NCBI GenBank assembly: GCA_907165135.1
Contig: OU015567.1
Location: 9,362,001-9,426,000, forward strand
DNA length: 64,000 nucleotides
Direction: 5' to 3'
From: Oikopleura dioica
Taxonomy: Eukaryota > Animalia > Chordata
Each line of letters begins with the position of its first letter. The stretch's first letter is position 1. Shown here piece after piece: positions 1-49,403 of the stretch. The position numbers were made by a program, and so were the translations under genes. The notes beneath the pieces are model-generated. The model worked only from the letters and a program-made list of their open reading frames with translations, was not told the origin of the DNA and made no database searches.

Positions 1-780
1 AACGCTTGGATTCCTGCTTGCGTATCTCCTTATTTAAGAAAAAATACTGCTTTTCCGAAACAAAATCAGCCACGTTACCTCCACTTATTTGTACAGAATC
101 TCAAAATTACATTCACTTTTGATAATTTAGTAGAACACATGTGACACATGTATTTACATCCCTTTTTCAAGACTAAAATTGACAAGTTGCAATCCACCCC
201 TTGCCGAGGCTCGCTTGGCGTCCAAGTTCTTGCTGTAATGAATAAAATATTTCAAAAAAAAACCTGGGTGTTGATTTTGATTAAAACAAGAGAGAGATCA
301 CAAGGATTGTAGGATTGAAGGCATCATGTGGCTTATCATAAGGCAGCCTTTTTGTTTAATAGACAATAACAAGTACTGGAATTTAGTATCTGCAAAGTCC
401 AATTCATATCCTGATCAAACAAGGCAGTTGATTGAGCATCATGACTCATGATTCATGAGTCTACTAAGCATATGATTTTTATTTGCTTCTTGTTGAAAAC
501 GCATAGCAAATGTTGTCTAGTCACCGTGCAAATAGTGCCATGCCGTTGAAATTCAAATAGAACGTGCGTCCAGAACGAAAATTTCAATAACACACTAAAT
601 TTTAAATATGCGTTTTGTAAGAGAGGTCGGAGAACTGCTTGATGCCATCAAGGACAAGATCGATGGTGGAGCTGAAGGGCTCCTTGGCGATGCTGGAGAT
701 GCAGTAGCAGATGCTTTCGGCAATGTTGGAGAGAGTATCGATAAAGCTGTCGGCGGTGCTGTTGACAACGCTGGTGATGC
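1..780 (+). repeat. Diverged copy of 5410-6206 (3' end of Ig/GPI gene, intergenic DNA, first part of Gly/Ala/Asp-rich membrane gene); probably extends left of the window
   Basis: Base 1 aacgcttggattcctgcttgcgtatctcc aligns to 5410; collinear with substitutions and small indels up to ...gctggtgatgc (780 vs 6206), then unrelated. Confidence 0.95.
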
Positions 781-802
781 ATTCGAGGTCGTCCAAACAT
801 AA
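608..802 (+). pseudogene. Truncated duplicate of the start of the 6034 membrane-protein gene
   Basis: MRFVREVGELLDAIKDK...NAGDA matches the 6034 ORF, then runs into unrelated sequence and stops at 802. Confidence 0.6.
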
Positions 803-1850
803 CCACAGCGTTTTTTAAAAGAAGAGAACATCCATCTAGTTGAAGGAGGAAAGACATCAAAGCTTGTCTTTTAATTCTGATTAAAAATATTCTTCGCGGC
901 GGAACAGATGGCAACAACAAAACCAGGCCATCACCAGCTCGTTATTAATTATTTTAGGCGACACGAATTGCTTTCCAATAAGGGCGAGTACGCGAGCGCG
1001 TTTTCCCAATCGTGAAATTTGTCAATTTTGAGCGCTACCGTATTGATTCCTAATCAGCAGCATGTTCTTTGAAGAATGAAAGCCATAGCAATTGTGATGA
1101 TGGCTTAATTTATTAATCTTTGCTATGTTTGCAGCTTTCAGATTTTTAAAAGGAAGATGTTATCGTCTTTTTAAGATTATTCAAAGGGCCTTTAGAAATA
1201 TCAACTCTGAATTTTAAATGAAAAGTCTTTTCACTCAGAATACACTCAAAACTGACCTCAAAGTTCAATTTGCTTGCCCGAAGTCATGATTTAGTAGTCA
1301 TTGCAATAACTCCTTCCAAATGCTACCAAAGCTTTGAACTTTGGTGAAAATATACTTTGCTGCGGAAAAATATTGGTATATCTGACAAACTGTGTCATTC
1401 AACTGTCAACCTAAGTTCAGGTCAAAGTTTCAAGCCCAATCTTTCTCCAAGAAACATCTCGATGAAATCGAAATTGTTTTGCATCAGAGTAGAAAGCAAA
1501 GAAGCCATGCTTTTATCAATTATTTGTTAAACATCAATGCTAATTTTATTCCCGCAACTTGAACGAAAATGAAACATAATCATTTAAAGTCGTCCTTGCT
1601 GGATAATAGACTTAGCTACAATAAGAAAAACACCGTTTGTCCACAAGATGAAGGCGTAATTGTCGTTTTGGTTTTATAATGTCCTGCCCCAAGGGGTGAA
1701 AAGCTGAAATTCGCGCTGGCACGCCACCTTTACTTTTAGGCTGCGGCGCAACCCCGTCCGCTTCAATTACGCCTGGTGACTTTTTCCAAACGATAGAATC
1801 ACTCGGCTCTTATCAACGTAAACTGCCATAGAATTTTTCAAAGGACAAAA

Positions 1851-4800
1851 ATGAAGTTTGCAAAGATAGCAACGCTACAGATACTGCTTGTAAATGCACA
1901 AGAGAAGAAACCACAGGAGAAAATCATCAGTCGAGGTGGAGATGTTCGTCTCAGGTAAGCTAACGATAATCAGGAATCTTAACTCAAAAGTGTTTGTGGC
2001 ACTGAGAAAGCCAGTTAAATCGCAAGTTGATTTACATCCTCAAATTGTATTGAGGATTAAAATCAACCCGAAACAGGGGAGTTGGCTCCTTAGGGTGCAA
2101 TAAAAGATTTGTGCTCCTGTAATTGAGGTTGGATTAATTGAAAAAGGTTACCCGTAATTTAATTCCATGCCGATTCGCGATTATTCCCTGTAGATCCCTC
2201 TCAATACTGTATGGAAAATCTAGTTTTGTATTTGCATCAAAATGATGGCCATTCAATGACCCGTGAAATATCGTTGAATAGTGATAATCCGCATACTGAG
2301 ATGATACAATACTGACATAGAAACACACTGTAAAAGATATTAGTAAGGACATTTGTCAGATCATCTACGAACTTTCTCCAAGCAAGGTTTCATCTTGTAT
2401 TCTAGCTGCAAAGTCAACACAACGGACTCAATCGTCTGGATAAACAGCAAAACTGGTGCAAGTGGAGAGCTTTCCATACCTCGCGCCCAGGGATCTAATT
2501 TTTTTCGCGAAAATCGCAATTTGCGAATATTTTGCGATTGCGATGCGAAATTTCGCAGAAAATTCGCAATCGCAAAAACTTTTTTGATCGAATCGCAATC
2601 GCATCGCAATCGCAACTCAGTTTTCGCAAATAATTCGCAAATTGCGATTTTTTTTGCGAATTTCGGTCTTGTCAAAGTGCTCCCTTGTTATTCTGACATG
2701 AGTTTTCTTTGACTCAGAGCCTATGTTCTGTGTTCTTAAGGCTTAATTGAAAGCCTGACCTCAAAAAATTTTCGTAAATTCTATGAAAAGTTACTTTTTT
2801 CGCTAAAATTTCGCAAATAGCGACGAAATCGCAATTCGCGAAAAATTCGCAATTTGCGACAAAAATCGGGGGCGCTCGGTTAGAATACCAAAAATTTTTG
2901 GTATTTGAATACCAAAAATTGGTATTTGAATACCAAAATTGGTATTTGAATACCAATTTTTTCTAGCGGAAACAATTTTTTTCCCTGAAAAACATGTAAA
3001 TCACCTCTAGAGCTTCCTAAAAAACAGGCGCGGAGCGCACACTCAAATTTTTTGGCGGGCGAAATTAGTATTCTTTGGCGAATTTGGTATTTGAATACCA
3101 AAATTGGTATTTGAATACCAAAAATTGGTATTTGAATACCAATTGGTATTCTAACCGAGCGTCTCCCACAAAAATCGCAATCGCATCGCAATTTCCGGAG
3201 TATTTTGCGTCGCAATCGCATCGCAATCGCAATTGATTTTCGGCAAAAATTAAGATCCCTGCTCGCGCCGTTTCTATTGGCATGGAACAACTCATGGACC
3301 TCGGCAAAGTCTCCTTCACTAGTGGAGGTATATGCCGCATTCTATTTCTGTAATTAGAAGTTAACTCTTTACGGACGACGCCAGTGCCAATTTTAGTGAA
3401 TAATTGATTGACTATAACCTTAACTCAATATTCTGAGATTAGGTTTTTGCCCCTGGCGATCAGGCAGGTGCAATCGCCGAGAGCCATCGGGCGATCTCGC
3501 TTGACCTGTAACTGTAAAATACTTATGTCAGCTTACGCCATCTAAATTAATTAAAATACTCATAGTCTGCAGGCATAAATAATGAACTAACGTCGAGTTT
3601 ACGTCGATTTTCTGGCAGTGGAGTATAAATAGTTGAGCAAGGATACTCTCTAATCGATCAAACTGGCTATAAGATGATAGTATATAAAACCAAACATAAG
3701 GAGTAATTGACTGAAAAATCACAAGATGAATTGAAATATTTTAAGATTATTCTCTGACGATCCAGAATGTTGATGATGATAAACAAGGACTCTGGAACTG
3801 TCAGCAAGCGGGTCGAATAGTCGCGTCTTACAATCTCATTGTCGATGGTAAATATTCAAATGAATGCTTCCAAATCCATTTAACACCGTCTTTCCCAGTG
3901 CCACCTGAAATTGAAATGGTGTCATCCTCGCCCGTCGAAGTAGGTGAAGATTCGACGTTGATCTGTCAGGCATCTGGACGACCCCGACCGAAGATTTACT
4001 GGACACGAAAGGGAGGAGAAACTATAGGTATGTTGAATCAATGCTAAGACTTATAGAAAATAAACAATTTGCGCGGAATCAGAGTTATTGATTTTGGATT
4101 ATTCAGACGGAGCCAAAACGATCGAACTTGCTGATGCAGATGGAGTTCAGCGATCCCAAGGTACATCTACATGTCTTTAATCCCTTCCATTACAATGCAA
4201 TTATACCGACCCGTCCATAAAGAAACCAAAAATAGTATCTTATTTTGCTTTCAGGAACTTTGGTGGTTCAAAATGTGACAAAATCGATGATTGCGGAAAT
4301 TTCCTGCAACGCACAAAGCCGCGCTACCACCGCCACCCAAACGACAGATGTGAACGTGAAATGTAAGCGCGATTCGATTTTTGACTACTCATTAGCTTGG
4401 AACACACACACAAACGAGAGTAGAGGCACAGATGCTCGTTAACGATAATTGTTTTGTATTTTGTCCCGAAATCATCATTTCCCATGAGTGCGCTAATCAC
4501 AATTACATGAGCGCGTTTTCGTGATTTGTTTTGTGCCTTTAGGTTCAAATGATGTTCTCGGGGTCAAGATACACGCTCATGCATGCTAGTTCATCATCAC
4601 AATATGTCATTTACATTTCCATCCTCAATGAATTTCTATTCATTTTCGCATGATCAACTTTTTAGTAAAAATTTTGAGCAATAATTAATGCTAGGCTCAA
4701 GATTTTTCCTCGCATGATTTTAAACAATGATTTTTAAAAATTGTATAGCTGCCCCCGTGGTGATAACAGAGGAGGGTTTGGGGATGACGAAGCGAAGGTA

Positions 4801-5446
4801 TGCCAAAGTAGGCAGTGCCACCCAAGTCTCCTGCATCGTACAAGGCTTTCCTATTCCTACTGTACGATGGTGGCTCGATGAGCGATTGTAAGTTGCTCAC
4901 AAGAGATAGGTTTTATTAATGATCATAGCTTGCGGATTGATGAGATCGAGGACGAGCGCATAAAGTTATGTACGAATGTCAGGGATGACGCCAAGTATGG
5001 CCGCATTATAATTTACACGATATGGAAGTGTTCATCAATTTTTAAACTCATTTTTAGTCCAAAAATGTCACTCTTGCTTTCTCGTCTTGCATTTTAACGA
5101 CAACGATACAGTAATAATGCAATAACTCTAAGTACCATCGATGCAAGTCAAGAGCTTGAGTAAAAATCATTTTTGAGCACTGTAAAAGCAATAAAAGAAG
5201 TGAAAGATGCCGACTTCGGTGTATACAAGTGTGAACCTTCTAATGAACTTGGATCCGACCATTTCAAAGCGGTCCTTGCCCGTAAAAAGGCAAAATTTTA
5301 GATACAATTTAACACTCATCCTAGGCCTTCCGAAAACCACGAACGAAGCTCAAACTCAAGCACGCAAATCGGGCCAAAATGGAGCCTCTACTCAATCTGT
5401 CAATTTGCTAACGCTTGGATTCCTGCTTGCGTATCTCCTTATTTAA
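1851..5446 (+). CDS. Three-Ig-domain GPI-anchored cell adhesion protein (lachesin/IgLON-like), multi-exon; exon 2 interrupted by a MITE
   Basis: Signal peptide MKFAKIATLQILLVNAQ (1851-1954, GT donor); Ig1 DVRLSCKV..IVW..DYSLTIQNV..GLWNC; Ig2 VPPEI..TLICQASGRPRPKIYW; Ig3 VSCIVQGFPIPTVRW..DFGVYKCEPSNELG; hydrophobic GPI-type tail LLTLGFLLAYLLI* at 5446. Confidence 0.85.
2488..3261. mobile_element. Non-autonomous hAT-type MITE (774 bp including a nested element) inside a coding exon
   Basis: TIR CAGGGATCTAATTTTT...AAAAATTAAGATCCCTG; perfect 8-bp TSD ctcgcgcc (2480-2487, 3262-3269); subterminal cgcaat/attgcg repeats. 8-bp TSD with CA ends is the hAT signature. Confidence 0.9.
2868..3167. mobile_element. 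Nested 300-bp Mutator/foldback-like MITE
   Basis: TIR GGG(G/AG)..CGCTCGGTTAGAATACCA; 9-bp TSD acaaaaatc (2859-2867, 3168-3176); six near-palindromic TGGTATTTGAATACCA units. Confidence 0.8.
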
Positions 5447-6033
5447 GAAAAAAAAACTGCTTTTCCGAAACAAAATCAGCCACGTTACCTCCACTTATTT
5501 GTACAGCGTCTCAAAATTACATTCATTTTTGATAATTTAGTAGAACACATGTGACACATGTATTTACATCCCTTTTTCAAGACTAAAATAGACAAGTTGC
5601 AATCCACCACTTGCCGAGGCTCCCTTGGCGTCCAAGTTCTTGCTGTAATGAATAAAATATTTCAAAAAAAAAACCTGGGTGTTGATTTTGATAAAACAAG
5701 AGAGAGATATTGAGATCTTGATCTTGAGAGATTTTGATAAAAGAGGGATTGTAGAATTGAAGGCATCATGTGGCTTATCATAAAGCAGCCTTGTTTGTGT
5801 TCCAGTACAATAAGTACTGGAATTTAGTTTCTGCAAAGTCCCATTCATATACTGATCGAACAAGGCAGTTGATTAAGCATCATGAGTCTACTTAGCATAT
5901 GATTTTTATTTGCTTCTTGTTGAAAACGCATGGCAAATGTTGTCTAGTCACCGTGCAAATAGTGCCATGCCGTTGAAATTCAAATAGAACGTGCGTCCAG
6001 AACGAAAATTTCAATAACACACTAATTTTAAAT

Positions 6034-7112
6034 ATGCGCTTCGCAAGAGAGGTCGGAGAACTACTCGATGCCATCAAGGACAAGATCGATGGTGGAGCTG
6101 AAGGGCTCCTTGGCGATGCTGGAGATGCAGTAGCAGATGCTTTCGGCAATGTTGGAGAGAGCATCGATAAAGCTGTCGGCGGTGCTGTTGACAACGCTGG
6201 TGATGCCGTTGCAAGTGCTTTTGGCAATGCTGGAGATGTTCTTGGAGACTCATTTGAAGGTAGTATTTACGTTTTATATTTTAAGACTACCTATTCTTAT
6301 AGACATGCAAGACGTAGCTGGCGATATGGTCAAAGACATTAAAAATGCGTTTCAGCAGAAACTCAACGAATTAGATGACAAATTTGAGGATTTGGCCGAC
6401 AATATCAACTTCGGAGGTTGTTCTAATCTTCATCCGTCCAATGACTTCCCGGTAATGGAGTGGGCCGCTTGGACGATGGTCTTTCTTCCGCTCATTTCGA
6501 TCATCATCAACTGCATCTTTACGAGAAAGCAGACCAGCAAAGAAGATGATGGCGAAACATCGCCAGTCCAAAGCAAATCGGCAAAAATAAGACAAATTTA
6601 TCATTTTTTTATTGTTATTTAGGTTCACTCCTCATCTGTTGGACTTGTAGGCATTCTCTCGATGATTGCTGGAACTCTCTTCCTTATCTTCTACTACAAT
6701 GTATGTTCTGGATACTGATAAGGTTTATAGATTATTTTTAGTTCAAAAACTGTAACGAAGCTACTTTCGGAACATGCTGGAATCAAACTATGCTAAAATG
6801 GCACGTTGGAATGACCCTTGCTGTTGTTGTTGCCGGAGCCATCTGCTCGACATTGATCACGATTGTTATGATCATGCTCGTAAGTTGAAACAAGCCCTAC
6901 AAAAATGATTTTTTTAGGTCTGCCAAGGTGGTGGATGCATGCAGGCAATTTGCTTTCACATCTTCCTTCAATTCCGTAAGAAAAATTTACACAATTGTTT
7001 TCCAATAAAAACGATCATAGAAATCACACTTATCTTTGCCGCTCCTGTTGTTGCTGTTGCCTACGGATGGGACTACACTTTCGGAAGCTGCGAAATTTTG
7101 AATTTATTGTAA
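6034..7112 (+). CDS. Multi-pass membrane protein with Gly/Ala/Asp-rich 11-mer repeat region; true start uncertain
   Basis: Short GT-AG introns join exons encoding GDAGDAVADAF-type repeats and hydrophobic segments (WAAWTMVFLPLISIIINCIF, VGLVGILSMIAGTLFLIFYY, MTLAVVVAGAICSTLITIVMIML); stop at 7112 overlaps AATAAA. Confidence 0.6.
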
Positions 7113-7175
7113 ATAAAGTGTCTCTAGAACCGAAGTGTTGTTCATCTCAATAATTGACAGACTGCTCAGTTTAAA

Positions 7176-8268
7176 ATGAGCCATTATCTATCCCAAAAGG
7201 ATGATTTTGATATAATCGACCACATTTACAGACTTGGTCAAGATGCTGAGAAGCAAAGATTCAAGGAATATGTCTCGGCGACGAGAATGCAAAAATGGTG
7301 GCGCGGACGCGCAGCCCGACTGAAAATCAAAAACGTGGTCGAGGCTGCGTCTACTGTCAGCCGATTTCTGGGCACAATCAAAGCGAAAAAGATTCTGATG
7401 CGATGTATAAAAAAGACAGTTCTGGAAGATCAGCGAAAATACTTTGACAGCAAGATTGTTAAATTTCAAGCTTTATGGCGAGGATACGCGAGTCGGAAGA
7501 ACATATTCTGGTATTATCAGTGGAAACGTGACCTTGCGGTAAGTCGAACGTTCAGATTTTACAGCTAACAAATATTAAAGAATCTTGAAGTCATGAACGA
7601 AATCACCTTGCGAAATCTGGAGCAGTATCAAATCCGTAAAAAGCTTGATGAACTCGAAGAAAATGAACAAAAAAGAGTCGAAAAACGTGAATCCGCCAAA
7701 AAGCGATCTAACTACGAGCCTATCAATTATCTCACGTGTTCTTCGACAAAAATAGTAGACACCAGCAATGTTATTCACAAGAAAAAGCGCTGCGAAATTA
7801 TCCCTACCTGCATGATAAACGTATTCGAGGAGAAAGAAAAGAAACCGCCCGTTCAACTGAAACCGATAAAAGCACGTGGTAGACCAAAAGGGCCATTTAG
7901 AAGTGAGGAAGCCGTCACAATGCAGAAGACACGAGCACCCAGTCCGACTTTGAGAGTAGCAACACCCTTTGACCTTCAGGATGAAAGCAAACGATTCGAA
8001 AAGAAAATTAAATGGATAAACAGAATTCAAGATCCGATGGTAAGCAACAAAAAGTTTCCTTACTTATCTCTACTTTCAGAAATTCGCAACAATGTCAAAA
8101 GCATCATATGAACGAACTCTGTGGGGCCTAACGCCGTACAATCCACGTGACCTGACAAGCTGCAATTTACGCGAGGAATACGAAGACCCCTTCCGACCAA
8201 AGTTCAGATCCCAAGTTCCTAACATACCGATCTTTGACCGACTGGGTCGATCCTATGATGAAAGATAA
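7176..8268 (+). CDS. SPATA17: Spermatogenesis-associated protein 17-like (IQ motifs)
   Basis: IQ motifs MQKWWRGRAAR and FQALWRGYASRKNIFWYY; KGPFR...PTLRVATPFD matches the SPATA17 C-terminal motif; three exons. Confidence 0.8.
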
Positions 8269-10169: not shown

Positions 10170-11952
10170 TTAGTAAGTCATCGGCTCCTGGAATTTTCGA
10201 GGATTGGAGCGTGCTGGCATGAAATTTCCTCGAGGAGCCCCTCGACCTCGGCTATTTCAGGTGTCCATTTTGTTTCAAAAGTTTTTTTTTCTTGGGCAAT
10301 CAAACACCATTCCTGCTACTTCCTCTGAAATGTCCACTGCCTCGTCCACGCGCTCCGGGCACAGTTCCCCGCGCCGAGTATCCCCCTCGACCTCTAGTTG
10401 GTGCAGTTCCGGTTCGTCGATTAGGCATCATCGGCTCGTAGTGCGGGTTTCCATCGTTAGGAATTGTTCGTGTTACTCCAACGGGCTCTGAAGCAGCCAT
10501 TTTCTTTCTGGCGTATTCAGACTCGAATTTTTCCGGTTCAGGCATGTAGTCAGGTTCATTGGGGACAGAAACGCGGATCCCATCGCCAGTTGCTCGAGCT
10601 TCTCGGGTGTCGCTTAAATTATTCCTTGAAACTGGTCGGAAATAAACAATTTCATACTTATCTTTCATAGCTGCTCGTTCCTCTTCGAGAGCTTTGTTCA
10701 TTTTATTGCGCGCTGTGACCAGCTTGGCCTTCGTTTCTGCTTTCTCTCTCGTGAGTCTTTTCTGTTTCGATTCGTCAGCTCTCTTTTCATCTCTGTAATC
10801 TCTGATGGACCGGCGCGTACTGATCAGCTTCCTTTCATTATCTCGCTTCTCTTTGGTGTATCTCACGGCCGCTTCAAGATCATTGTCGACTAAAAGTTTT
10901 AAAGTTAAAGAAAACTTACGATTTCTATTTTTTATCTCTCGACTCACTGTTTCTTTTCATTCTAGAGATGTCCTGGCGAACAGATCTGTATTTAGACTGC
11001 GTTTCATTTTTCTTTTTGCGTTTTTCGCTGATCGTCTTGTCCATTTCTTCAATCTTCTTCATCAGCGCCGCAAGCTCGTCATTTTTATCCTCGTTGGTGA
11101 GATCGATGAGCGTTTTTCGTCGAGTAGGGTCGTTGTCTTGCACTGAAGATTCATTTTATAGACGGATATTGATTCAAAAAAGCTTACCGCAAATGTCCAC
11201 AATATTCCCGCAGAGTTCGCCATTCAGTTTGCTGTGGAGAGTTTGGGCGTCTACGAGACATAAGAATTATAATCCAAATCGACCAAGAGGAATTACCTTT
11301 TGATGATTCACAAGATAGCAAAATCGCCGTCTCGTTTTTATTCTTCGCGAATTTGATGCCACAGCGAATTCCAAATTTTCGAATAGCACGTGCCGCCGTT
11401 TTTGGTTCAAGATCGTTTCTGACTTTTGTGATCCAAAGGATCTTCATATTTTCGTCAATTTCCATCTCCTCGCTCTCGTGATGGATATCTTCAGAAAAAT
11501 CGAGCTCATCAAGGTTAACTTCGTCTTCATTCATTTGGAGATTATCACATTGGCTGTCTGCGTCCTCGCAAGATTCATAATCAGCGATTCTTGCCAAGGG
11601 TTCGTCGTCGTCATTGTGAATTTCTTGGACTTCATTGTCCTCTGCGTCCATGGCAGCAGATACTTGTTCGTTTTCTTCGACAATAGACAGTTCTGATATA
11701 TTTCATAATATGAAAATACCGTAAGAATATATTATTACCTGGTTCGGAATTAGAAAATTCATCAGAAGATTGTTTTCGCTGGGGGACATCAGCAGCAGCA
11801 AAATCGTAGGTATCGGGATCAAAGTCATTGTCTTCGATCCAGTCGGATAATCTTTGGAGAAGTTCAGCTTTCTTGCCCTCCGTACTTTCGTGTCGGGCAG
11901 CAAGTGCTTCACGGATTTCTGCTACTTTGAGATCAGTCAACAATTTCACCAT
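10170..11952 (-). CDS. SAFB/SLTM-like protein: SAP domain, acidic region, divergent RRM, charged coiled coil, RGG tail
   Basis: SAP LKVAEIREALAARHESTEGKKAELLQRL; RRM-like KILWITKV...DAQTLHSKLNGELCGNIVDI; RGRGG repeats continue into last exon RGRGAPRGNF via a GA-AG intron (10252-10312). Confidence 0.75.
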
Positions 11953-12009
11953 CACAAAATCCTTCTAAAAAGTTCAGATTAAAAATAAGGATTATCGTTG
12001 CTTAAAGTT

Positions 12010-13181
12010 TTAATTGAAGAGACACTGGCTATGAGCTTGACTAGGCTCTTTTTGAGTGCTGCAGAAAGCGGGAGATGCAGGATAACTGTCAGAGATATCA
12101 AACGAGTGCTGAGTCGATTCTGTAATTGAAAAAGGGCAGCTATCTTCGATTTCCATCGTAAGGTTTTTATTCGGATCTTCATCCTCGTTTGACTCAACTG
12201 GAGTCGGCGAGATAATTTCCAGGGGCGGACTGGACGGTGGTGTTTCTTCCAATGCTAACGAAGGTATTCGTGGGGGGCTTTCTTCGTCTTCTAACCATGG
12301 CTGTTGATTTCGAGTCCTTTGGTTTTACCCGGCATTTTTTGCCGGGCAACCCACAGATTTTTCTACGGGTTACTCGCGCGGAGACCCGTGCGAGTAAATC
12401 GAGTAAATGGGTAAAGGATAATCGCGAGCTACTCGCGAAAATTTCGACTAGAAAGAAGAAAATTTGCTCGTCTGATTGGCTCTCGAAAAAGGGTTGCGGG
12501 TAATCGCGAGCTACTCGGCGGAAAGGAGAAAACAGGTAGCGCGGGTAGCCCGTGAAAAGACTCTCCGTGCGAGTAACCCGCTGTAAAATCTGCGGGTTGC
12601 CCGGAAAAAAAGGCCGGGTAAAACCAAAGGACTCAAAATCAACAGCCATGCTTCTAACGGCAAATCTTCCATCGTATATTCAGCGATTGGAATCGTAGTT
12701 TGAGATGCTTCTGCAGACCAGCTTGGCTCCTCATTGAAATCTGAATAAGAGCTCACAAGATTTTGAAGAAACGACGATTATACCTCCAGTGACAACAATT
12801 TTGTATCGCCCGAGAAAGATTCGAATGGTCTTTGGGTTGATTTCCTTGGGAATATTGAAGCGTTTTTTCCAAAGCTGTTTCTGTGAATAATCCATGCACT
12901 TTATGATCACGGCCTCCTCGAATGTACCGCAGGAAATGTGCAACTCGCCAGCATCTTCAGTGAAATCAAGCATTTGCGTCCAGTGCTGATTTAGCCGCAG
13001 TTTTGTGTAGCTACGGATGATTGGAAGATCCTCTGTGAAAAAGCTGATCCTGTAAAAATGTTTTACAAATGATATCAAGAAAACCTTTCCTTGTCTCCAT
13101 GGATTGTGTTTGATCAACCAGTTTGCCTCCCCAATCCTTTGCATCCCCGAAAAGCCCTGCTTCTCCGAAATCAACTTCCAT
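12010..13181 (-). CDS. Uncharacterised protein with Ser/Pro/Glu-rich C-terminus; last exon interrupted by a MITE
   Basis: ATG 13181 (MEVDFGEAG), exons joined by short introns; removing 12296-12650 plus one TSD fuses ORFs 12511-12756 and 12010-12252 in frame (DLPLEDEESPP). Confidence 0.6.
12296..12650. mobile_element. Non-autonomous hAT-type MITE (355 bp) inside a coding exon
   Basis: ~38-bp TIR CATGGCTGTTGATTT(C/T)GAGTCCTTTGGTTTTACCCGGC; perfect 8-bp TSD cttctaac (12288-12295, 12651-12658). Confidence 0.92.
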
Positions 13182-46812: not shown

Positions 46813-49403
46813 ATGAGTGTCGAGGAAATAAAAGAGGAACTTCAAAATACTTTCGATATCGAAGAAGACGAGGTTAAGGAACTCGATGAATTGTACATGG
46901 TCTATCTCAAAAGCGGACAGAGCATTGAGGACTTTCAAGACTCCCTGTTCGCCTGGAAACTCAACTCAAAAGAATACAAGTCCATTCAAGGAGTGTCTTC
47001 GGAAATGATTAGACGATTCGAGGGAACAATGAAGACAGCTGAAAAAAAGAAACCATCAAATCAGAGTAAATTTGGGACGCCAAAACGAGGTCGTGATGGC
47101 ACACCATTGAAGGGAAAGGTACAAATGATGACACCGCGAGCGAAGGTTCAAAAGTTGGAATATGTTCTTGACTCGCCTGCGTCAGCGGCCTTCAAGGATA
47201 GAAAAGATAGCGGGAAGATTATAGCTACTTTAGGTAAGTGATAATTTTAATGTCATCGTCTGAAGCAGGGATGTAAATCACCCCACCATTTTCACCCCAC
47301 CACAGCAAAATGGTGGGGTGGTCGTTGGTGAAAAATCACCCCACCACCACCACTGAAAAAAGGTGGTGGTGGAAAATCACCCCACCACAGTGGTGGGGTG
47401 GCTGTGGTGATTTACATCCCTGGTCTGAAGTCTTAAAACTATATTTTAATATGGCTTAAAAGCCCTTTTATCAGTTTTAGTAGCACATAAAATCGAAATC
47501 CTCGTGCGTGATAATCACGTCGTGATACATGCTTGAAATATATACTAACTTTTAAGGTGGTGATATTCAACCAACGATGTCGGATGAAATCGAAATTGAG
47601 AATCTTATAGGTACAATTAATTACTGAGCATAATTTTCAATTACTGATCCTCAGATACGAAGTCATACAAACTCCTGTCATTCGATAGACGACATATTGC
47701 AGATGAAATAGCATATTTTATCAACGAACGGTGCGAGGTCATTGAAAGTAGACTTGGGATCGGTAAGTGCGTTTTTTGGAACCATATTTTTTAACAGACG
47801 ATTCAGTCGAACAAGCGAGCTACTCGATGATAACAGATGTGCCAATCAAAGTTTGCGGCATGATCATTTGCGAGGGGTCGAAAGGAGCTGATGGTGTTTA
47901 CCTGCTTCGCGATGGAGAGCAAGTTCAGCTTGACATTTCCGAGCTTGAGGGAAGCTCTATTTTTCCTGGGATGATTTGCGCTGTTGAAGGAGTTAATCTT
48001 ACTGGCAAGCTTATCGTTGTGTCGAAGATCATTCAGCTTGATGACCAAGGAACAGATCAAAAATAGAATACCCTTTATCAAATGATAAGTTAAAAAGAAA
48101 TTATAAAATAAAAAAAATCGTTCATAAATGACCTAACGATAAGCAACGGAGGATGAGGGAATCAAGGAAGATACTACAATTGTGATATGCGCTGGGCCTT
48201 ACTTTACATCAGACAATACTTCAAATGAGCCTTTGGAAGAGCTGATAACGCAAGTTGCTTCGTTGGCGCCACACATGGGTACGTCAGTGGTATCGGAATC
48301 TAATAAATATTTTTGATAGCTATCTTTATGGGACCGTTTCTGGATGAAAATCATATGGGCGCGGATTGCATCAGCCCGCACAACCTCAACGATCTGTGGA
48401 AAAAGCAAATCGAAAGTCTTGCTCAAAGCGGAACTAAAGTTCGAATGATTCCATCCACATCAGATCTCTTCGCGGACCCAGTCATACCAACCCGAGCAAT
48501 TGATGAAAAAGAGTTTGCTTATTGTAGGGAATATATGGTCAGCAATCCGTGTTTCTTGGGCGCAAATAAATGGACGATTTCCGCTATTTCAGCGGACCTA
48601 CCATTGAACTTGATGAAGACGGAAATAGTCAAGAATCCAACAAACTCGTGCAAATTCACAAGGGTAAGATCATCTGATTGTATAACTTTTGGGACACACA
48701 GAAGACAAATAAATATAGATAATACGCTTTAAATAGATTTCTATAACGGTATATGTCCGACTTTATTTATAGTAATAAACCGCAATTGCGCTAAAAGTGA
48801 ACATAATTCAATTTTATTGGAACAAATTGTGGTTGGAAAGCACGAAGAGGACCCAGTTATCGTGATTGAGGCTCGCTTTACACGGAATTTTATATGATCT
48901 TCCAAAATAGAAAACGTCAGACAATTTTATTGCTTCCGAGTTTACGTACTTCTATCGCGGGGAAAATGCCAAAAGTCCAATCTAGACAATTTCAAATGTT
49001 CAAAAGGACACCACCAACGCAATCAGATTACATCAGTATATATACTTACAACTTGTAAATTACAGTGGCGTTATTCATTCCTTTTAGATTGGCGAGCATC
49101 TTCTAAACCAGCAATGTATGATGCCACTCTTCCCTGCGCCAGAGGACATCTCAGTCGACTACTCCAAGTTCAAAGAGAGTGTCTGCTTTGATAAACTACC
49201 AAATGTTCTTGTCGTCCGTTCGGAACTCAACCCGTTTATCAGAACTGTTGGAAGCACGCTCTTTGTCAATCCAGGAAAGCTCACAAAAGGTAAATCTACC
49301 CAGCTCTTGCAATTCTGATGTTTTTATAGGAAAAGGCGGTGGAAGCTACGCAACAATCCAGCTCAACTCTTCAGGCCATCGAGCAAAGATCCAAAAACTT
49401 TAG
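46813..49403 (+). CDS. POLA2: DNA polymerase alpha subunit B
   Basis: SIFPGMICAVEGVN, VICAGPYFTSD, FMGPFLD, PLFP, FVNPGKLTKGKGGGSY. Confidence 0.9.
47266..47422. mobile_element. 157-bp hAT-type MITE in a POLA2 intron
   Basis: TIR CAGGGATGTAAATCACC; 8-bp TSD gtctgaag (47258-47265, 47423-47430); internal CACCCCACC/GGTGGGGTG repeats. Confidence 0.93.

Follow-up and report, generated by a model that had tools for sequence, protein, structure and literature searches.

In Oikopleura dioica most ancestral introns have been replaced by new ones, many of them non-GT/AG, and reverse splicing is the usual proposal for their origin; in the sister larvacean Fritillaria, MITEs have been shown to be the source of new introns. 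An earlier note on the DNA analysed here had pointed to MITE-derived introns in larvaceans, and these are indeed reported, as non-canonical introns of Fritillaria borealis (Henriet et al. 2019, as reviewed in PMC11282704). In maize, Ds1 and Ds, which belong to the Ac/Ds system of the hAT superfamily, can leave a transcript by splicing when they lie in exons (Dennis et al. 1988 and Wessler 1991, both as cited in PMC5432752 and PMC3260210). Introners have been characterized in Micromonas, Aureococcus and dinoflagellates (Huff et al. 2016; Gozashti et al. 2022, PMC9860276), and the main text of the latter study mentions neither Oikopleura nor tunicates. The non-GT/AG introns of O. dioica itself were described by Denoeud et al. 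2010 (via PMC4122922), Frey and Pucker 2020 (PMC7072748) and Bliznina et al. 2021 (PMC8008620), and their origin has been put down to reverse splicing, not to MITEs.

Here we analysed a stretch of 64,000 nucleotides from O. dioica (the window), in which a transposon lies within a coding exon; the locus is relevant to the question whether, in O. dioica, a transposon that lands in an exon can act as an intron from the outset. We consider it probable that a non-autonomous Ac-like hAT-type transposon recently inserted into exon 2 of the gene g6594 and broke it, and a broken allele is more likely than a new intron.

Window position 1 corresponds to position 9362001 of OU015567.1 and to position 12768 of L001. 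The host gene, Oidioi.mRNA.OKI2018_I69.chr2.g6594.t1 (CAG5112373.1; Okinawa assembly OKI2018_I69, chr2), encodes a small secreted protein with three Ig domains and a GPI-signal-like tail. Exon 1 (1851..1954, plus strand) carries the start codon, a signal-peptide-like MKFAKIATLQILLVNAQ... and the donor CAG|GTAAGC, matches residues 1-35 of P0151, the product of the neighbouring copy g6593, and is missing from the deposited g6594 models. Exon 2, which measures 140 nt without the element, is split into 2406..2487 (plus strand), coding for the first half of Ig domain 1 and ending in ..SCKVNTTDSIVWINSKTGASGELSIPRA, and 3270..3327 (plus strand), reading VSIGMEQLMDLGKVSFTSG. Exons 3-11 (3746..5446, plus strand; 3746-3847, 3899-4027, 4107-4160, 4255-4362, 4749-4887, 4929-4969, 5189-5281 and 5325-5446) are all open and code for the rest of Ig1, Ig2, Ig3 and the hydrophobic GPI-signal-like tail; a Pfam search with exon 4 returned Ig_3 (2.9e-9) and I-set (1.9e-5). 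The nine other introns are all GT-AG, with GTA donors. Both deposited models, g6594.t1 and g6594.t2, begin at Met 3282, just 3' of the element; they were built with RNA-seq intron hints by a pipeline that admitted 11% non-GT/AG introns.

The two flanks of the insertion translate in one frame (...GELSIPRA from 2407-2487 and the second part of exon 2 from 3270-3326), which bears out the claim that removal of the element plus one target-site duplication restores an open Ig exon. The same continuity is seen in two relatives, g6593 (P0151) and the Bergen orthologue (P0152), both of which are unbroken at the insertion site (SIPRAVSIG and SIPRAVAIG, respectively). The remainder of g6594, aligned with P0151, P0152 and P0153, is intact and recently under purifying selection; between g6594 and the neighbouring copy, exons differ by 1.2% and introns by 6.6%, and a single amino-acid change is seen. 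SNPs at 2427, 2452 and 2466 distinguish the two copies.

The insertion itself (2488..3261, strand unassigned) is an Ac-like hAT-type MITE, a composite, non-autonomous and non-coding element of 774 bp with ends CAGGGATCTAATTTTTT and AAAAATTAAGATCCCTG and subterminal ATCGCAA repeats; its open frames are low-complexity ones only. It is flanked by an 8-bp target-site duplication, the length typical of the hAT superfamily, whose left copy CTCGCGCC (2480..2487, plus strand) codes for ..P R A of exon 2 and is an exact direct repeat of the right copy (3262..3269, plus strand). The Ac-like inverted ends correspond to CAGGGATCTAA; both read CAGGGATCT(T)AATTTTT, which makes them short TIRs of YARNG / Ac type, and 9 of their 11 bases agree with the end of maize Ac, (C/T)AGGGATGAAA. 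The two subterminal regions hold 13 of the 23 ATCGCAA heptamers of the 64-kb window. A search of Rfam with window positions 1-8000, element included, gave no match. Intron 1 contains, at 1971, a CAGGAATCTTA that resembles a TIR; it lacks an inverted partner and was put down to chance.

The earlier note had placed a hAT MITE at 2480-3269 in a coding exon, and its coordinates and ends stand; it is not a single element, since a second MITE of 301 bp is nested within it (2869..3169, strand unassigned), with GGTATTTGAATACC palindromes, its own 8-bp duplication AAAAATCG at 2861-2868 / 3170-3177 and inverted ends at 2868-2891 / 3143-3166 that are 92% complementary. In the DNA run X3, a contig with a depth of 835 joins 2860 to 3170 through 8 ambiguous letters, indicating that most copies of the outer family lack the nested MITE.

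The element family is young and multi-copy. Its depth in X3 ranged from 412 to 1949, against approximately 55 in the flanks (7-35x), which points to tens of copies at an identity of at least 95%, and X3 contigs on the element showed 0-2 mismatches per 131-161 nt. No further copy was found elsewhere within the 64-kb window, nor did a scan of metagenome contigs for both element ends yield one.

The insertion is also young, is carried by some samples only, and the allele that contains it is unfixed. Presence/absence polymorphism, which had been proposed as a check, was seen in X3, which comes from another DNA sample: a single X3 contig of 1363 nt covers 2039-2479 and 3262-4191, omits exactly 782 nt and joins 2479 to 3262, with 8 ambiguous letters. 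This is the sole contig on the flanks, and its depth (54.8) equals the flank depth (55-62). The duplicated CTCGCGCC occurs once in this contig and once in the neighbouring unit (L001 10623-10630). The contig carries 12 of the 42 substitutions and none of the 3 indels of the neighbouring copy, and is thus nearer to g6594; as it is a mosaic of both units, its assignment to g6594 and not to the neighbour is likely but falls short of proof. Because some samples have the exon insertion and others lack it, the event can be dated. Filled and empty states are both present in one laboratory culture, and the insertion shows Ac-like hAT MITEs to be currently active in the Okinawa lineage.

These observations fit a course of events in which the transposase would have cut the target CTCGCGCC with an 8-bp stagger, giving rise to the duplication, and the incoming transposon would already have carried the nested second MITE. 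If the element is retained, the transcript should read through 74 element-coded codons to a stop at 2710-2712, where the open reading frame 2353..2712 ends; since the protein would be truncated or the message would be open to decay, the filled copy most likely acts as a null allele or a weak one. Its persistence may be explained by its very young age and by the intact and all but protein-identical copy, g6593, located 4.6 kb upstream. This copy may be a true tandem paralogue, or else the second allele of one heterozygous animal that the assembler set beside the first; the broken allele would accordingly be tolerated through redundancy or through heterozygosity.

The second of these alternatives, that g6593 and g6594 are two alleles of one locus set in tandem by the assembler, is nearly as probable in our estimation as its converse. 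The two units abut as a perfect tandem repeat without spacer, the joint lying between 780 (end of unit A) and 781 (start of unit B), and the divergence between units is uneven (0.75-11%), averaging about the reported heterozygosity of 3.6%. The Canu assembly reached 1.5x the genome size and was merged with HaploMerger2, the Bergen genome has a single copy, and in X3 one contig set lies on the unit, with a depth of 55-62 versus approximately 27 for haplotype-level contigs, its contig being the mosaic described above. However, a true tandem duplication that is young or copy-number-polymorphic, with gene conversion, fits these data equally well. On the allelic reading the reference animal would be heterozygous for the insertion, which bears on the context of the element and not on its nature.

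The alternatives that do compete with a gene-breaking insertion all require that the element be spliced from the message, and indirect evidence leans against this. We built joined forms (with the element deleted, and with 18 nt retained) for frame arithmetic and divergence counts only. The earlier note had proposed a route through the inverted ends, with a non-canonical candidate donor AG|GG in the left end (2489..2492, plus strand; last exonic base 2490) and a candidate acceptor TTAAG| in the right end (3250..3254, plus strand; last intronic base 3254). Its arithmetic is correct: a cut after 2490 (CAG|GGATCT) and after 3254 (TTAAG|ATC) would define a GG-AG intron of 764 nt and leave 18 additional nt, and in silico the predicted junction 2490|3255 keeps the frame and contains no stop. 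Both ends carry the AG in either orientation, as had been claimed. The further proposal that the route would work in any insertion phase needs one exception, since in one phase the retained CTG followed by a duplication starting with A would create TGA.

Partial rescue by cryptic sites, in which other donor/acceptor pairs would serve to excise the element together with some of the exon, or to excise only some of the element, is in our view unlikely. Donors such as the exonic CAA|GTGGAG at 2461 or CTG|GTGCAA at 2455 could be joined to the AG at 3309, and the messages would gain or lose sequence in frame or, as with exonic Ds1 in maize, be mostly frameshifted. We counted 57 G*-AG pairs that are in frame and free of stops; several of them have GT donors, and their acceptors are confined to three AGs (3254, 3309 and 3322). 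Ds1, itself a short hAT element, is spliced alternatively from exons through several donors and acceptors at most 35 nt from its ends. However, none of the in-frame GT candidates shows the GTA common to the nine real donors, and deletions that keep the frame would cost 13-24 residues of Ig domain 1.

That the element is a nascent intron, removed from 2491 to 3254 by a permissive U2 spliceosome through the CAG|GG and TTAAG| of its inverted ends, strikes us as quite improbable. The 18 nt left behind (Q-I-P-A-R-A) would fall in a loop of Ig domain 1, the filled allele would be functional, and the element family would be able to seed new introns. The model of the Ig domain 1 fold has a mean pLDDT of 57, and less than 50 at the insertion site, which makes it unusable for deciding whether the site is a loop. 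Several features speak for such an intron and, by the same token, against a broken allele: the route at the ends is in frame and stop-free in either orientation, the candidate donor has the AG|G-A context, and the TTAAG|A tail of the candidate acceptor is identical to that of the real intron 2 of g6594 (3741-3745). Non-GT/AG introns, which account for approximately 11-12% of the total in O. dioica, are enriched in the set of new introns; the claim that Oikopleura uses G-starting, non-GT donors after an exonic AG agrees with the reported flank of exonic AG and +3 A, into which CAG|GGA fits. The intact state of the rest of g6594 is also in line with a functional allele. The two candidate sites pair with each other in the terminal stem (approximately 20 bp) of a very stable hairpin, which may draw them together, as proposed for the MITE-derived introns of Fritillaria, but the same stem buries the proposed donor. 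Moreover, the junction 2490|3255 is just one of the 57 in-frame routes, the gene's nine other introns have GTA donors throughout, both RNA-hinted models begin 3' of the element, the paralogue and the Bergen orthologue have no 6-residue insert at the site, and the allele is unfixed. The broader proposal, that the filled allele is a segregating proto-intron, cut at the CAG|GG and TTAAG| sites that all copies of the family have in their inverted ends and left with a harmless 6-residue insert, is similarly doubtful; if true, CAGGG-type hAT ends would directly supply the AG|G-nonT donors found in excess among the many new introns of the species. Skipping of exon 2 as a means of rescue was rejected, since the loss of 140 nt shifts the frame.

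Three oligo-dT RNA runs labelled as the same species gave 0, 0 and 1 read on the 3.8 kb between 1700 and 5500, with no junction read among them; these counts are too low to bear on splicing either way, and the runs may stem from another lineage or from stages in which the gene is silent. A protein search with window positions 2353-2487 gave no match, residues 1-116 of P0151 matched only the Bergen orthologue and g6594.t2, and the matches of exon 4 in a representative protein library were the deposited models. No transcript-derived g6594 protein, with or without the 6-residue insert, was found in the protein collections searched.

As it stands, the locus holds a young transposon insertion of an ordinary kind, by which one copy of the gene is probably broken, with a route through the element's own ends that is exactly predictable. 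The element resembles introners in that a multi-copy DNA-transposon family is involved and that splice sites could arise from insertion together with target duplication. What defines introners is a large number of near-identical copies annotated as spliced introns, whereas the Oikopleura family is known here from its DNA copies. The proposed donor shares the exonic AG and +3 A context with the non-GT donors of O. dioica, but the non-GT class described in the O. dioica papers is GA-AG, and GG-AG is reported for the species in none of them (PMC4122922, PMC7072748, PMC8008620). With the introns of Fritillaria the locus has in common a larvacean tunicate host, inverted ends and target duplications at the borders, and a permissive spliceosome. 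Most of the Fritillaria introns have AG-AC or AG-AT borders and follow an exonic TAC, whereas the exon ends here in CGCGCC and the right end of the element has no AC. A Fritillaria-style AG...AT cut (2489-3256) was rejected, since the 14 nt left behind would throw the message out of frame; here only a GG-AG cut is in frame, in an unfixed insertion whose splicing is a prediction on paper. Maize Ds1 is likewise a short hAT element that is non-autonomous, duplicates 8 bp of its target and has nearly identical ends. The splicing of Ds1 is experimentally established, proceeds through several alternative sites and seldom recovers the frame; the Oikopleura element, known here from DNA, differs in its candidate donor, GG rather than GT, and in its animal host. 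As in Ds1, the candidate sites are only a few bases away from the termini, and most of the element could thus leave the message.

The octamer CTCGCGCC was found twice, without mismatch, in the repeat analysis of the window (positions 2480-2487 and 3262-3269), and the two copies enclose a 774-bp A+T-rich element (2488-3261) whose first bases, CAGGGATCTAATTTTTT, and last bases, AAAAATTAAGATCCCTG, are inverted ends with one indel. In these ends, 9 of 11 bases agree with the terminus of maize Ac/Ds elements, (C/T)AGGGATGAAA, which likewise produce 8-bp duplications. Of the 23 ATCGCAA heptamers in the window, 13 fall within the two subterminal regions of the element; no real open frame was found in it, and a comparison with Rfam gave no match. 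The duplication, Ac-like ends, subterminal repeats and absence of coding identify it, on every feature readable from DNA alone, as a non-autonomous hAT-type element, and the earlier description of a hAT MITE with an 8-bp duplication in a coding exon thus holds. It is also composite: nested at 2869-3169 is a further element of 301 bp, composed of repeated GGTATTTGAATACC palindromes, which has inverted ends and an 8-bp duplication (AAAAATCG) separate from those of the outer element.

The interrupted gene, g6594, lies on chr2 (OU015567.1) of the Okinawa assembly OKI2018_I69 of Oikopleura dioica, where the window begins at position 12768 of the genome locus L001. We read it as eleven exons, with these coordinates: exon 1 (1851-1954, with a signal-peptide-like start), exon 2 (2406-2487 and 3270-3327, 140 nt without the element), and exons 3 to 10 (3746-3847, 3899-4027, 4107-4160, 4255-4362, 4749-4887, 4929-4969, 5189-5281 and 5325-5446). 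Because the product has three Ig domains (exon 4 matches Pfam Ig_3, 2.9e-9, and I-set) and a hydrophobic, GPI-signal-like C-terminal tail, its architecture appears to be IgLON/lachesin-like. The flanks of the element, GELSIPRA before and VSIGMEQ after, share one frame and homologous sites read through, as expected from the proposal that removing the element restores an open Ig exon. If it is retained, the frame continues for 74 codons inside and stops at 2710-2712; skipping of exon 2 would shift the frame. The sequence CAGGAATCTTA at 1971-1981, 16 nt into intron 1, differs from the element end by one mismatch, but no inverted partner was found and the likeness is probably due to chance.

Uninterrupted versions of the site were found elsewhere. 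The near-identical gene g6593 (protein P0151), in the adjoining unit, reads ...GELSIPRAVSIGMEQ... with a single CTCGCGCC, and the orthologue from the distant Bergen lineage (P0152, FN654913.1) carries SIPRAVAIG inside one continuous exon. In X3, a DNA run of a different sample from the same study as the run best covering the stretch, a single 1363-nt contig aligns to 2039-2479 and then to 3262-4191, leaving out precisely 782 nt; the joint is ambiguous over 8 letters. Its depth is 54.8, compared to 55-62 for neighbouring contigs and approximately 27 for haplotype-level contigs, and no second contig on the flanks was found in this run. Since the adjoining unit is 95-97% identical, we checked to which unit the contig belongs: it carries 12 of 42 substitutions and none of three indels of the neighbour unit in its span, and is 98.5% similar to the g6594 copy versus about 96.5% to the neighbour. 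Thus, although a mosaic of both units, it is probably the empty allele of the g6594 copy, in line with the presence/absence polymorphism raised in the earlier note. Whichever unit it belongs to, the insertion postdates the divergence of the two units and is missing from another sample.

X3 depth over bins of the element is 412-1949, versus approximately 55 in the flanks, and X3 contigs on it show 0-2 mismatches per 131-161 nt, values that identify a young family with multiple copies. The joint 2860/3170, at a depth of 835, indicates that the nested element is absent from most family copies, and X3 loose ends place the nested element in further contexts too. No further copies were found in the window or in the metagenome contigs scanned. 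An unrelated MITE at 12288-12658 (minus strand; duplication GTTAGAAG, ends CATGGCTGTTGATTTTGAG...) interrupts a long exon of a SAP-domain gene (approximately 10170-13181; deposited model of 655 aa), which without it reads ...EDLPLE/DEESPP.... A 157-bp MITE at 47266-47422 (duplication GTCTGAAG, ends CAGGGATGTAAATCACC, 10 of 11 bases identical to the maize Ac end) lies approximately 25 nt 3' of AG/GTAAGT and is apparently intronic.

Tolerance of the insertion is probably explained by the presence of an intact copy. Gene g6594 belongs to unit B (781-6206) of a tandem repeat of an Ig gene and a small gene, perfect and without spacer; unit A extends from 3835 nt before the window start to 780 (4616 nt; L001 8932-13547). 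The units differ by 1.2% in exons (12 of 1032; a single amino-acid replacement was seen) compared to 6.6% in introns, a pattern indicating that both were under purifying selection until recently; the upstream part differs by 0.75% and the downstream part by 11%. They may be two alleles of the sequenced male: heterozygosity is given as 3.6% in the assembly paper, whose Canu assembly was 1.5 times the genome size and underwent merging with HaploMerger2, X3 contigs form only one set over the unit, with depth at the diploid level, and Bergen has one copy; alternatively, the repeat may be a copy-number polymorphism. The identity of the element is the same in either case. The small gene after each Ig gene (608-802 and 6034-6342) is Gly/Ala/Asp-rich (MRF.REVGELLDAIKDKIDGGAEGLLGDAGD...), and the deposited g6593 model joins the two genes (P0151 C-terminus).

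We consider a young, gene-breaking hAT MITE insertion, present in only part of the samples and protected by an intact copy or allele, to be the most likely reading, and a fairly probable one. The alternative, a proto-intron spliced out in frame through sites in the element's own ends, appears unlikely. A donor after 2490 (CAG/GGATCT) and an acceptor after 3254 (TTAAG/ATC) would excise 764 nt; the residue, CAG, ATCCCTG and the second duplication, is 18 nt long and reads, in silico, PRAQIPARAVS without a stop, and the frame arithmetic of the proposal is thus correct. The outcome would be equal in the other orientation, since the inverted ends are symmetric, but not in every phase, as in one of them CTG followed by an A-starting duplication creates TGA. 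Non-GT/AG introns make up approximately 11-12% in O. dioica and are enriched among new introns, the exonic AG and +3 A context of its non-GT donors is matched by CAG/GGA, and the TTAAG/A acceptor tail is identical to that of g6594 intron 2. However, this route is one of 57 in-frame, stop-free pairs of G-starting donor and AG acceptor, where one pair in three is expected to be in frame, and all nine ordinary introns of g6594 are GT-AG with GTA donors. Furthermore, both deposited models (t1, 186 aa; t2, 277 aa), generated by AUGUSTUS with intron hints derived from RNA-seq of the same culture in an annotation that took in 11% non-canonical introns, begin at Met 3282, directly 3' of the element; t1 also omits the third Ig domain. 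The element RNA is predicted to form a single long hairpin (-299 kcal/mol, z = -15) that pairs donor and acceptor to each other in its terminal stem, which may draw the two sites together but would also hide the donor. No RNA runs containing the stretch were found on record. Of three oligo-dT RNA runs labelled as this species, two had 0 reads over 1700-5500 and the third had 1, too few to judge splicing, and searches with individual g6594 exons found no transcript-derived protein of this gene in protein collections. As filled and empty alleles segregate in laboratory culture, the proto-intron reading is cheaply testable.

In the O. dioica literature we found no paper linking its new introns to MITEs. 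In maize, the short hAT element Ds1 was shown decades ago to leave exon transcripts via terminal sites (as cited in PMC5432752, PMC3260210). The larvacean Fritillaria has MITE-born introns with non-canonical borders (reviewed in PMC11282704); a cut of its AG...AT type would here leave 14 nt. Introners are also present in algae and dinoflagellates (PMC9860276). A proto-intron in g6594, if true, would be a novel instance of an already described mechanism, in a species whose new introns have usually been ascribed to reverse splicing.
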